Below, one piece after another: positions 8,708 through 40,506 of a DNA stretch of 46,299 nt (within the stretch, counting starts at the first letter, position 1; each line of letters opens with the position of its first letter). Position numbers and translations under genes: made by a program. Source of the stretch: Octopus bimaculoides (lineage: Eukaryota). The notes beneath the pieces are model-generated. The model did not search any database. It saw only the letters and a program-made list of their open reading frames with translations, and was not told the DNA's origin. Where the stretch lies: NCBI RefSeq assembly GCF_001194135.2, contig NC_068998.1:3826350-3872648 (forward strand). Reading direction: 5' to 3'.

Positions 8708-8822
8708 ATGCCACCCGAGAAAGCACCTCACGAACATACTGCATCCATGTCTGTGCCCAAGTCACAATGCACCGCTGAAATAGCCCGGCCAGGCCCGAGC
8801 ACTGAGGAAATACCTGCAGAAG
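8708..8822 (+). CDS. Candidate first coding exon A: MPPEKAPHEHTASMSVPKSQCTAEIARPGPSTEEIPAE, ends in phase 1
   Basis: ATG at 8708 (second in-frame ATG at 8747), 38 open codons plus 1 nt, then strong donor GAAG|GTGAGT (GT at 8823). The frame is also open from the acceptor at 8648, which would give a 174-nt phase 1-1 exon. Protein not recognised. Confidence 0.55.
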
Positions 8823-11800
8823 GTGAGTACACGTATATCTTTATCGTTCATTAAACTGTTTGTTGCACCAACAATTATTTCTGATTCTGTCGTCCAAATT
8901 CTTTTTCTGTCAATCTTTGACACTGTTTCAAGTAATTTTCTTAAACTGTTTTCCTAATCAAAACGAAAACAGTGTGAAAAATTTTTCATTCTGGAAAAAA
9001 AAAAAAAAAGAGAAAAGAAAAAAGAAAAAGTGAAAAGAAAAAAGTGAAAAAATGAAAATATCTCAAAAGAAAAGAAAAAACGTACTGATAAGAATACGTG
9101 TCAAACTAGACAGAAGAATATGTGAAATGTCTGAAAAAAAAAATAAAGTTTCTTGCAAAGAAATCTCGCAAAACGAAATAAAAGGTGGAGGTCTTACTTA
9201 AAGATTGTCTGTGAAATAGAGAGCAATAAACCTGTATATATAACCATATCTATATCTATCTATCTATCTATATATATATATATATATATATATATATATA
9301 TATATATATNNNNNNNNNNNNNNNNNNNNNNNNNNNNNNNNNNNNNNNNNNNNNNNNNNNNNNNNNNNNNNNNNNNNNNNNNNNNNNNNNNNNNNNNNNN
9401 NNNNNNNNNNNNNNNNNNNNNNNNNNNNNNNNNNNNNNNNNNNNNNNNNNNNNNNNNNNNNNNNNNNNNNNNNNNNNNNNNNNNNNNNNNNNNNNNNNNN
9501 NNNNNNNNNNNNNNNNNNNNNNNNNNNNNNNNNNNNNNNNNNNNNNNNNATATATATATATATATATATAACATGTTAGAAAAGCAAGTCTTGCACAAAC
9601 CTGTTCATTTAATAAGTTTAATCTCTAATTTCAACTTTATTGATATCCAAAAGGAAAGTAAGAAAAATAAAGTTATAAAAATTGGTAGATAAATGGACAG
9701 TTAAATAGATAGATGGATAAAGAGATAGATAGATTGATAGATAGATAGAATCTATCTCTGTTCTGTAATAAGAGCAGGGGAAATAATTCTCTTGCACAAA
9801 AGTAATGAAAACGAGTCCTAGAATCATTTATGAATACAGCTATTAGTTGTTATATTGTGTATGTGAGTGTATATGTGTGTATGGTGTGTATATAACGTGA
9901 GTATATATATATATATATGTGCGTGTGTGTGTGTATGTGCATTTTGTGTGTAAATGTATGCATAAATGCATGCATAACCATGTAAGTCTATATATAAATA
10001 AACGATATATGTATATATATAGATGTGTGTAAAAATGCACAAATTCATATATATATATATAAATATATATATATATATATATATATATATATATGCGTGT
10101 GTATGTATTCTGTAAATGTATAAATACATACACATATTTACGTATGAGAGTGTAAAAATGTATGCATAAATGTAAAGTATATGCAAAATGTGTGTGTGTG
10201 TGTGTGTGTGTATATATATATANNNNNNNNNNNNNNNNNNNNNNNNNNNNNNNNNNNNNNNNNNNNNNNNNNNNNNNNNNNNNNNNNNNNNNNNNNNNNN
10301 NNNNNNNNNNNNNNNNNNNNNNNNNNNNNNNNNNNNNNNNNNNNNNNNNNNNNNNNNNNNNNNNNNNNNNNNNNNNNNNNNNNNNNNNNNNNNNNNNNNN
10401 NNNNNNNNNNNNNNNNNNNNNNNNNNNNNNNNNNNNNNNNNNNNNNNNNNNNNNNNNNNNNNNNNNNNNNNNNNNNNNNNNNNNNNNNNNNNATATATAT
10501 ATGGTAAACTGTTTATTTATCAAAAATATGTTGCCTGATAAAGTAAGCATCTGACAACTTTTTCTCACCTGGGTATGAAGTAATTAAGGAAAAGATGATG
10601 TACGAATTTGCTGCCAATAAATTGAGTGTTATAATTCTATATAATGTAAATAGAAGATAATACGTGTGTGTGTGTGTGTGCTTGAATGTATGTCCATGTG
10701 TGTGTGAGAGAGAGAGATAGAGAGAGAAACAGAGAGAGAGAATGTGTATAATGTATGGATATATACAAACATACTTTTACATACAAATGTCTGCTTACGT
10801 GCAGATATGTATTCATATGTATACACAAATGTAAAGTTATATACATGTGTGTGAGTTTGTGCGTTTGTATGTCAAAAACGTATACATAAAGGTATATATA
10901 TATATATATATATATATATATATATATATATATATATATATATATATATATATATATATATATATATATGGATATATATGCAAATTTATGTGTGTAATGG
11001 TATATGTATATATATATATGTGTGTGTGTATGTGTATAAATTCGTATATAATATACACAAGCTTGTAGATTATGCACACAAATACTGAAATTGACACTTA
11101 TTTTCTAAACAAATGTGGTTGGGGCAGTTAGAACTACCATAAATGGTTAATAAGCTCTCTAATAAACTTGCATTTGGAAAGTAATCAATCTATATTATAT
11201 AATCAATATGTGTGTGTGTATATGTATGTATGTATGTATGTATGTATGTATGTATGTATGTATGTATATGTCTATAGTATATGTTAATATTTCGCCATGT
11301 ACAAGTGCCATACTCATAGCAGGAAACAAAACAAAGAACAATAACCACTGATAACTAAAAGAAGTTCATGAAAGAAACGAAATGACGGGTATCAGATGTT
11401 ATAAACTTGTTTAATTTTAGGGTTAATTGCACTTTGGGGCTGTATAGTAATTAACACATGCGTGCACACACGCACACGATATGATTTTTAAAATTATTCA
11501 CAAAATCTGAACTGTTGGGTATTTAATTATTATAGTATAGTTTTAACTTGTATTTAACACGTAGCAGAATCACCATATGTAGTAGTAGTAGTTGTATTAG
11601 TAGTAGTAGTGATAATTATCATGGCTGCGAGGCTATATATTTTGGGTGTATGATAATTAATTAAATTAAGAAACGTTAGTTTAATTGATATAGTAACGTT
11701 AATAATTATGATGATGTTTATGATTATGATGATGACAATAATGATAAGAACAATAATAACAACAATAATAATTGTGTTAATTATGATGAGAATAATAATG

Positions 11801-12459
11801 GTAGTAATAGCTACAATAAAAGCGATGACTTATTTGGTTCAATATATCAATCAGATGAAGGGGACATTACAAAGATGATTAAGGATTTTTGTTGAAGTTT
11901 ATATAATAGATGAGGGAAGGAAAGTGAGACGAGAGGAATGAGATAAAAATTAATATTAATTAATATAAATTAGGAAACAAATAGATTAGCGATGGTATAA
12001 CAATGATAAAAATGGTAATACTAATTACGTTGATAACAGTTCTTGGAAAAGACTGCTACAAAAACATGAAAAGAATGGGAAAAAAAAATTACATGTTGAT
12101 GTGTGGATTGTATTTAAGACATTACGTTAATACCAATTCTATGTTATAATATTAGAATGTATTCCATGCTAGAATATATACAACTTCAATATTTATTTAT
12201 CAAACTTTTACAAGAGGAAAGATAGTGACCTCGAAGTTACTGCCGGCCTTCGTCGGTCTGTTTAATATACATGAATTCTACAAAAAAGCATTGGAGTAAT
12301 TCTTCAGTTTAAATTATTTTTTTATTGTCTTGNNNNNNNNNNNNNNNNNNNNNNNNNNNNNNNNNNNNNNNNNNNNNNNNNNNNNNNNNATATATATATA
12401 TATATATATATATATATACACACACATACATATGTGATTATACACACACATATATATCT

Positions 12460-38500: not shown

Positions 38501-40487
38501 CCCTCTTTCCCCTAATATATATATATGACATATATATACATAATATATGTATATGCATATAATATATATATAATATATATGATAAAATATATATTTCATA
38601 TATATGTATGTATATACATACATACATATATATATGAAATATATATTTTATCATATATATTATATATATATATATGTATATATATATATGTATATATATA
38701 TANNNNNNNNNNNNNNNNNNNNNNNNNNNNNNNNNNNNNNNNNNNNNNNNNNNNNNNNNNNNNNNNNNNNNNNNNNNNNNNNNNNNNNNNNNNNNNNNNN
38801 NNACACACACACACACACACACACATATATATATGCACTAACACGTACATTGAATTATTCGGGTACAATCATGCACGCAATACATGTATATATATATATA
38901 TACATTGTAAAAATACACATTCTCCTATAATACATATACAAATGCACATAATATTATTCTCATGAATGTTTTATTTTTTGTAAAGGATTGTAAAGATATG
39001 TAGAAAGAAAACTTAGTTGTTTAAATTTTTATACTTTTACTTTAGGAAATAAAAAAAATTATTGAAACTCGTGAAATGAATAACTTAAAATACGAAGAAA
39101 TCGCAGAAATTAGTATCGATTCATAAACATAACGGCCGATATGAGTTTGCCCTTCTCACGGACGTTGTTCATCTAGGACTACGTTCACAGTCTCCAATGT
39201 AACCTTTTATTTTCAAGATGATCGGTTATAAGACATCTGGTCAACCTCTTCATATAATGTTAATCTATAGAATGTTTAATCTATTAAACATGTAGAATGG
39301 ACTTTTTATTTTAAACATTTCTAATGTCAAATAGCATATTACATATGCCAACTGCAACAGAAGACCAAGTGTTTTATAATTAATTTTATGTTCTAGGATT
39401 CTTGTTCTTTTCCAAGTAAAATTCTTCTGGATCACTGTCGTCAAAATGGCGGCTATTTTTCTTATTGACTCGTACAAATATCTTTACATTTTCACTGTTT
39501 TACCTAGGATCATCAATTTTTTTGTGAAAAATATTGAGCAAACATAAGAGGTGAGCTTTAACTGAACAAGTATTTGTTTATATATATATATATATATATA
39601 TATATATATATATATATATNNNNNNNNNNNNNNNNNNNNNNNNNNNNNNNNNNNNNNNNNNNNNNNNNNNNNNNNNNNNNNNNNNNNNNNNNNNNNNNNN
39701 NNNNNNNNNNNNNNNNNNNNNNNNNNNNNNNNNNNNNNNNNNNNNNNNNNNNNNNNNNNNNNNNNNNNNNNNNNNNNNNNNNNNNNNNNNNNNNNNNNNN
39801 NNNNNNNNNNNNNNNNNNNNNNNNNNNNNNNNNNNNNNNNNNNNNNNNNNNNNNNNNNNNNNNNNNNNNNNNNNNNNNNNNNNNNNNNNNNNNNNNNNNN
39901 NNNNNNNNNNNNNNNNNNNNNNNNNNNNNNNNNNNNNNNNNNNNNNNNNNNNNNNNNNNNNNNNNNNNNNNNNNNNNNNNNNNNNNNNNNNNNNNNNNNN
40001 NNNNNNNNNNNNNNNNNNNNNNNNNNNNNNNNNNNNNNNNNNNNNNNNNNNNNNNNNNNNNNNNNNNNNNNNNNNNNNNNNNNNNNNNNNNNNNNNNNNN
40101 NNNTGTGTGTGTGTGTGTGTGTGTGTGTGTGTGTGTGTGTGTGTGTGTGTGTGTGTGTAGGTCTGAAACTGTCTATGCATGTACATTTATGTGTGTAAAC
40201 ACGTACGTATAAACTTATGCTTATATATATATATGTATATATATATGTATATATAATGTATATATATGTATATGATATATTGTGTGTGTGTAAACAATTT
40301 TGATGTAAAAGAGAAATATTTAACTAACTTTAAAATGCAATATAATAATTTAATGACTTCCATCAAATTCAATTTTTTTCAAAAAAAAAACAAACTATTT
40401 TTATATTTACTGTGGTCAGGCTGGAGCAACGACTTCAAAAGATCTTACAATATTATATTTTGTCTGACAGTTATTTTTTAATTTCAG

Positions 40488-40506
40488 AAAACTTGTATAA
40501 AAACAG
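40488..40506 (+). CDS. Candidate 19-nt microexon, phase 1 to 2, (E/K)NLYKN(S/R)
   Basis: Acceptor TTATTTTTTAATTTCAG|, exon AAAACTTGTATAAAAACAG, donor CAG|GTAACC. Open when entered in phase 1; entry in phase 2 gives a stop. Confidence 0.4.

Follow-up and report, generated by a model that had tools for sequence, protein, structure and literature searches.

How many of the ATG-initiated open segments that run into a splice donor in one long stretch of octopus DNA are true first exons, and to which gene do they belong? The question is raised by a 46,299-nt stretch of the Octopus bimaculoides genome (assembly GCF_001194135.2, contig NC_068998.1, positions 3,826,350 to 3,872,648, forward strand), here called the window. 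The original prediction for it was an array of at least six phase-1 first exons (candidates 1 to 6, numbered 5' to 3'), each with its own promoter. All were to be spliced to a 19-nt microexon at 40488-40506, one with the help of a 2-nt AG exon, giving combinatorial N-termini in the manner of the Pcdh and UGT1 clusters. We consider it quite probable that the window is instead part of the 5' region of O. bimaculoides lin-28, that the gene has alternative 5' exons ending in phase 1, and that the four remaining candidates and the microexon are chance matches.

Segments of the window were searched exhaustively with HMMER against 1.84 billion representative proteins, names were obtained by cluster look-ups, and the proteins were aligned back to the window with tblastn. 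The HMMER search returned four proteins, including P0002 and P0003 at 98-100% identity. The look-ups added P0005, P0006 and P0007 to these two. The proteins, from O. bimaculoides and Octopus vulgaris, map as follows.

P0003, A0A0L8FMV3 (A0A0L8FMV3_OCTBM), O. bimaculoides, 106 aa: 8708-8822 joined to 34049-34254, 100% identity by tblastn.
P0006, A0A0L8FNJ1 (A0A0L8FNJ1_OCTBM), O. bimaculoides, 83 aa: 15005-15050 joined to 34049-34254, 100% identity by tblastn.
P0007, XP_014788470.1 (LOC106882341), 177 aa: an upstream exon outside the window, then 8649-8822 and 34049-34254, 100% identity.
P0005, XP_052830472.1, 162 aa: the upstream exon of P0007, then 8649-8822 and a cold-shock domain (CSD) exon outside the window, 100% identity.
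P0002, CAI9736376.1, O. vulgaris, 126 aa: exon 8649-8822, 100% amino-acid identity.

These models place the window inside LOC106882341 (lin-28 homolog) on the plus strand, where the models cover 199 kb of the O. bimaculoides v2 assembly and, in O. vulgaris, 129 kb. The 100% matches also identify the window as O. bimaculoides DNA. The expectation of one large gene was therefore correct. Gene models from a later chromosome-level assembly independently back both the exon order and the strand. In the newer O. bimaculoides annotation LOC106882341 has been renamed 'Y-box-binding protein 1' (XP_052830472.1), and the octopus annotation splits or misnames lin-28. The parts of the gene that fall in the window are listed here, with a slash marking each exon boundary.

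7398-8045, plus strand: conserved upstream block, 94-100% identical in 50-nt windows to congener contigs L002-L006; presumably a promoter or upstream leader.
8046-8822, plus strand: long 5' exon of lin-28 isoform 'B' (leader and first 38 codons), from cuttlefish mRNAs.
8649-8822, plus strand: internal 174-nt coding exon (phase 1-1) of the octopus models, acceptor TTTCCAG/ at 8648.
8708-8822, plus strand: candidate 1, the ATG-initiated coding part, 38 aa, phase 1, donor AAG/GTGAGT (12.65 bits).
15005-15050, plus strand: candidate 2, alternative first coding exon MGYKERDALTTPWSV, 15 aa, phase 1, donor TTG/GTAAGC; used in P0006.
34049-34254, plus strand: coding part of the shared downstream exon, acceptor ...TTTTTTTTGTAACTCTAG/GG, entered in phase 1, stop TGA at 34252-34254.

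On re-reading the sequence, the coordinates, translations, donors and phases given for the candidates were all correct. Candidates 1 and 2 coincide exactly with annotated 5' coding exons. The exon ending at 8822 is present in four octopus gene models; residues 1-38 of P0003 are the translation of 8708-8822 at 100%, and P0007, P0005 and P0002 align to 8645-8824 at 100%, downstream of an exon that is absent from the window. The octopus NCBI models use the candidate 1 exon (8649-8822) internally, fed by the farther-upstream exon, and it is not solely a first exon. P0006 is the candidate 2 peptide joined to the exon at 34049. P0003, P0006 and P0007 share their final 68 aa, encoded by 34049-34254 at 100% identity. 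Two distinct 5' exons, 8708-8822 in P0003 and 15005-15050 in P0006, thus join the same exon in the same phase, and the junction codons put both donors, 8822 and 15050, as well as the acceptor at 34049 in phase 1. The predicted convergence on a shared exon in phase 1 holds in this form, but the shared exon is 34049-34254 and not 40488-40506. The real exons are in public gene models and hence already known.

The identity of the gene follows from the exon that P0005 places after 8822. In P0005 the sequence ...EEIPAE is joined in frame to a lin-28-like CSD exon, and the best named matches of that exon are 'protein lin-28 homolog' of molluscs and insects. The exon is identical to that of complete cephalopod Lin-28 proteins (P0008, P0127 and P0129, with 'LIN28 [Sepia pharaonis]' included). 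A complete cephalopod Lin-28 has a CSD and two CCHC knuckles (PF00313, PF00098, PF21890), and P0129 and P0008 contain all of these. Missing from the window are the CSD and knuckle exons, the canonical lin-28 first exon 'MASEPGQ...' and the exon that precedes 8649-8822 in P0005 and P0007. A location of the constant exons outside the window had been anticipated.

Cuttlefish mRNAs provide a second line of evidence. The deciding sequence, P0129 (207 aa), reads MPPEKSTHDHTASMSVSKSPCLSVVQFVQPGPNTEEILVE/GGRRK..., a homolog of candidate 1 followed by full Lin-28, and its N-terminus, MPPEKSTHDHTASMSV...TEEILVE/G, is homologous to candidate 1. The last 167 residues of P0129 are those of 'LIN28 [Sepia pharaonis]', whose own N-terminus differs (MYVLNR/G). 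Nine spliced cuttlefish mRNA contigs from nine sequencing runs carry P0129. One of them, L010, has a 566-nt leader and is colinear with 8046-8430 (80%) and 8613-8825 (82.6%) of the window; its homology stops at the 8822 donor, where it enters the CSD exon. Because the mRNA homology ends there and continues into the CSD, 8822 is a true donor that feeds lin-28 in phase 1. The Sepia proteins P0127 and P0129 have different N-terminal exons joined to an identical CSD exon.

Between octopus genomic DNA and cuttlefish lin-28 mRNA the leader at 8613-8722 is nearly unchanged, and the coding part behind it is less conserved.

Conservation was also assessed against a congener, using genomic Logan contigs from runs SRR11869384-94 that cover 7398-9262 and 33776-36704, with a background identity of about 75-85% (roughly 80%).

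7761-8648, plus strand: upstream block and leader, about 98-99% identical.
8649-8822, plus strand: exon, 172/174 identical, both changes synonymous.
Beyond 8920: intron, about 60-80% identical.
34049-34254, plus strand: exon, 200/206 identical (97%) with flanks at about 80%; open reading frame (ORF) and stop kept.

The congener has the same acceptor at 34049 and matches all of the 48 nt before it. In the 59 nt before the candidate 1 ATG (8649-8707) octopus and cuttlefish differ at three positions. Each is a third codon position, and synonymous, when read in the frame of the octopus models that splice an upstream exon into acceptor 8648, which suggests translation of the N-terminal extension in one or more isoforms. 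The upstream block gives an indirect hint of a promoter. This conserved block, upstream of 8046, is CpG-rich, with an observed/expected ratio of 1.14-1.49 across 7501-8500, and the cuttlefish leaders start within it. The ATG of candidate 6, by contrast with the candidate 1 exon, is not conserved, the congener having ATA there.

These data bear on the possibility that nothing here is coding. In that case the gene models that include 8822, 15050 and 34049 would represent a transcript that is non-coding or upstream, and its ORFs would be spurious picks of annotation pipelines. Such pipelines choose in-frame ATGs by construction, the octopus products through the window are short (83-177 aa) and lack a Pfam domain, and exon 34049 has more nonsynonymous than synonymous changes. 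Yet in nine cuttlefish mRNA contigs the homologous exon runs in frame into an ORF for complete Lin-28, the substitutions are synonymous in two of two cases between octopus species and in three of three between octopus and cuttlefish, and P0005 links 8822 in frame to the CSD exon. We therefore regard this explanation as quite unlikely for the window as a whole. For the isoforms that end in exon 34049 a non-coding reading is plausible, and the constraint on 34049-34254 may act on the RNA and not on the protein.

Several points weigh against lin-28 with alternative 5' exons as we describe it. Octopus support for the window exons consists of gene models only, and for 15005-15050 of a single model from 2015; its transcription in octopus is presumed here. 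Between octopus and congener, exon 34049-34254 has five nonsynonymous changes and one synonymous, and no AATAAA or ATTAAA follows its stop (34255-34420), so the 68-aa peptide may not be a real protein. P0005, the only O. bimaculoides model that ties the window to the CSD, holds the first half of the domain and ends within it, and the databases searched held no full-length O. bimaculoides Lin-28 protein. Since the 'MASEPGQ...' exon and the exon that P0005 and P0007 share farther upstream both lie outside the window, the exon order given here is partial. Finally, that gene models lack candidates 3-6 does not prove that splicing never uses them.

An A-rich run at about 34370-34410 could give internal oligo-dT priming. 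With no poly(A) signal near the stop, this run makes the 3' end of the annotated short isoforms uncertain.

The arrangement that we favor would work as follows. Octopus lin-28 would be transcribed from the plus strand with very long introns and alternative 5' exons. The exon ending at 8822 could be either a long first exon starting at 8046 or earlier or an internal exon (8649-8822) fed from farther upstream, and a second annotated 5' exon would end at 15050. The first constant exon, the CSD start outside the window, begins in phase 1 and so requires that phase at the end of each alternative 5' exon. The same-phase rule reflects no special design, since productive 5' coding exons must end in this phase and pipelines choose in-frame ATGs. 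Use of exon 34049-34254, with its in-frame stop, would yield short isoforms that are truncated and lack the CSD, or are non-coding. The alternative exons would provide Lin-28 with different N-terminal extensions and 5' leaders, and alternative promoters might allow tissue- or stage-specific and translational control of this heterochronic RNA-binding protein. The data show which exons these are, their phase, their conservation and their colinearity with mRNA of another species; we infer which promoters octopus uses and any function of the N-terminal extensions. A bolder proposal, which we find doubtful, is that coleoids keep a second deeply conserved lin-28 transcription unit. It would combine a long leader with near-unchanged stretches (notably 8613-8722), distinct N-termini and translational control with a giant intron containing recursive sites (35025), and minor 5' exons (15005-15050, perhaps others) would feed the phase-1 junction.

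The remaining elements of the predicted array are the following.

19902-20208, plus strand: candidate 3, 102 aa, phase 1, donor TCG/GTAACA, the weakest of the predicted donors (3.75 bits).
31578-31590, plus strand: candidate 4, MGVE, phase 1, donor AGA/GTAAGT.
31731-31749, plus strand: candidate 5, MLYLLT, phase 1, donor CAG/GTAAGT.
34538-34548, plus strand: candidate 6 (MET), phase 2, downstream of exon 34049; ATG to ATA in the congener.
40488-40506, plus strand: 19-nt microexon, flanks ...TTTCAG/ and /GTAACC, donor at 40506 of 8.65 bits.

No gene model or protein that we found contains candidates 3-6, the 2-nt exon or a junction to the 40488 microexon. Candidate 3 had no homolog in the exhaustive protein search; it sits about 130 nt downstream of a presumed short interspersed element (SINE) copy at 19590-19770. 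Candidates 4 and 5 are too short to be searched alone, and none of the proteins in the three-member cluster of all 34049-exon proteins starts with MGVE or MLYLLT. A homolog search with the CSD exon found no other octopus isoform sharing it. In a word-index search, 19 segments from the surroundings of candidates 2-5 and of the microexon matched nothing. The candidate peptides are 4-102 aa long and lack a Pfam domain, and none of the window's 267 non-repetitive stop-free segments of 42 aa or more matched a Pfam family. Exact look-ups of the ORFs 19902-20216 and 8304-7951 (minus strand) and of P0003, P0006 and P0007 returned no record.

To what extent the shared phase is itself evidence can be judged from counts of ATG-open-donor pairs. 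Donors were scored with a generic matrix of approximate values, with a 3-bit cut-off just under the weakest predicted donor. At this threshold the plus strand has 392 donor-like sites and 399 pairs, with 147, 120 and 132 in phases 0, 1 and 2; the corresponding minus-strand numbers are 109, 94 and 91. At 7.5 bits or more 51 plus-strand pairs remain (14 in phase 1). At 9 bits or more the window has 11 pairs where local dinucleotide shuffles give 11.0, and for phase 1 three where they give 3.3. The excess over shuffles at low thresholds touches all phases and stems from ATG- and GTA-rich microsatellites. The same-phase pattern is not beyond chance. Any exon that ends in phase 1 will necessarily read through 40488-40506. 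The 19-mer is open in two of the three frames, and acceptor-plus-donor look-alikes of the microexon number 22 on the plus strand and 20 on the minus strand. Most candidates had been placed in GC-richer islands. Only candidate 1 is in a clear GC/CpG island (92nd percentile), the others ranging from the 22nd to the 83rd.

The predicted array in full is thus very improbable. Its phases are as described, two of its exons are real with a common downstream exon, and the microexon has an acceptor at the 95.7th percentile and a donor of 8.65 bits. Against this, no database protein contains candidates 3-6 or the microexon junction, the true isoforms continue into 34049 or the CSD exon, each strand has about 20 look-alikes as good as the microexon, the candidate 6 ATG is not conserved, and phase-1 pairs are not enriched. 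Self-BLAST detected no similarity among the candidate exon regions; as they are not paralogous, they do not form a variable-exon array of the Pcdh/UGT1 type. Only two of the six are in any model and neither joins 40488-40506. In intron DNA rich in SINEs and microsatellites, the remaining four ATG-donor pairs, like the 2-nt exon and the microexon, look like products of chance. For similar predictions, same-phase ATG-donor pairs are common by chance, and homology, conservation or RNA was needed to pick the two real ones.

The pattern in the window is of the ordinary alternative-first-exon, multi-promoter type known for lin-28 of other animals. Lin-28, a conserved protein acting on let-7, regulates developmental timing, and C. 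elegans lin-28 has a and b isoforms with alternative N-termini. 'Protein lin-28 homolog isoform X1/X2' is annotated in Mytilus, Ruditapes and Biomphalaria. Like other lin-28/LIN28 genes, the octopus gene has a phase-1 junction before G-G-R-R-K and probably alternative first coding exons leading to one CSD exon and an identical body (CSD and two CCHC knuckles). It differs in that the B-type exon is also internal, extra isoforms end in the non-CSD exon 34049-34254 and the introns are exceptionally long. With multi-promoter genes such as PKA C-beta and KCNIP it shares a few unrelated 5' exons that end in the phase required by the first common exon; in octopus, however, two or three exons are supported and not six or more, and separate promoters are putative. 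The likeness to Pcdh and UGT1 arrays is limited to the general logic of several 5' exons entering a common downstream exon, whereas the octopus lin-28 5' exons are unrelated to one another, span 15-58 codons (not large domain exons) and form no tandem family. Octopus protocadherin diversity reportedly comes from tandem whole-gene duplication and not from variable exons.

What we add to the known exons is modest: that LOC106882341 is the 5' part of lin-28, that the B-type exon and its leader are conserved between octopus and cuttlefish, and that recursive splicing might use two AG/GTAAGT juxtapositions. For cephalopod development it is of modest interest that these animals keep an alternative N-terminal exon and, with it, a leader of high conservation.

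The two juxtapositions coincide with a donor of the predicted array and with its 2-nt exon.

31731-31757, plus strand: candidate 5 site TTACTTACAG/GTAAGT, which fits the recursive-splice-site consensus; no gene model or protein contains it.
34990-35033, plus strand: acceptor-donor juxtaposition CTGCTACAG(AG)/GTAAGT, the predicted '2-nt exon'; 43/44 identical in the congener against a background of about 80%.

The donors at 31749 and 35025 could serve stepwise removal of an intron of more than 100 kb, an idea compatible with alternative 5' exons of lin-28 but unlikely. At both a polypyrimidine tract and AG abut GTAAGT, the host intron is very long, and the 35025 site is conserved well above background, with a donor of 11.9 bits and an acceptor before 35024 at the 98.6th percentile. 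On this motif, 34990-35033 is possibly a recursive splice site or a real donor. However, the window has three such motifs where 1.06 are expected, a number found in 10% of shuffles and so not significant. The 35025 site also has two extra bases (CAG-AG-GT) or else a poor GAG acceptor. Like the recursive splice sites of long Drosophila and vertebrate introns, these are (Y)n-AG/GTAAGT motifs in a very long intron, one of them conserved; unlike them, they are putative sites, show no significant enrichment, and one has a 2-nt offset. To our knowledge, recursive splicing has not been shown in molluscs.

The conserved upstream block contains an exact tandem duplication of the 20-mer TATCGTCTGCTTTCCTTTCG at 7911-7949. 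The window lacks the Bilaterian Lin28b promoter element (Frith & Ni 2023, PMC10735318, Fig. S29). The top result of a crude ab initio exon scan, 8002-8133 on the minus strand, was rejected as coding because the ORF call in the congener, P0001, reads through two stops of the window; on the plus strand the region also belongs to the cuttlefish lin-28 leader. A 118-aa ORF at 7948-8304 (minus strand) adjoins a strong donor-like ACG/GTGAGT, and P0001 has 151 aa in the congener. This ORF lies inside the conserved plus-strand leader of cuttlefish lin-28 mRNA and is a product of ORF calling, not a gene.

The window is AT-rich (about 34% GC) and has 16 N gaps, about 120 tandem-repeat rows and several SINE-like dispersed repeats; tRNA and Rfam scans gave no matches in it. 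The candidate exons touch no N gap. The gaps are confined to putative introns, and splicing across them needs no frame continuity. At 13 of the 16 the flanking sequence is a (TA)n, (TG)n or (AC)n microsatellite, where short-read assemblies commonly break. The 10-N gap at 35597-35606 is spanned colinearly by the congener contig, in which the (TA)n tract is shorter. The stretches 3930-5444 (minus), 19590-19770 (minus) and 23790-23970 (plus) belong to a SINE-like family of tRNA origin that has a B-box-like GAGTTCAAATTCC and then ...GAGGTCAACTTTGCCTTTCATCCTTTCGGGGTCGATAAAATAAGTACCAG; seven copies stand head to tail within 1.5 kb (3930-5444) and two more are elsewhere in the window. Three further dispersed repeat families of unassigned type, 73-80% identical and mostly inverted, occupy 2077-2249, 22815-22985 and 17315-17414; 12468-12598 and 42471-42592; and 21553-21669 and 28757-28869.

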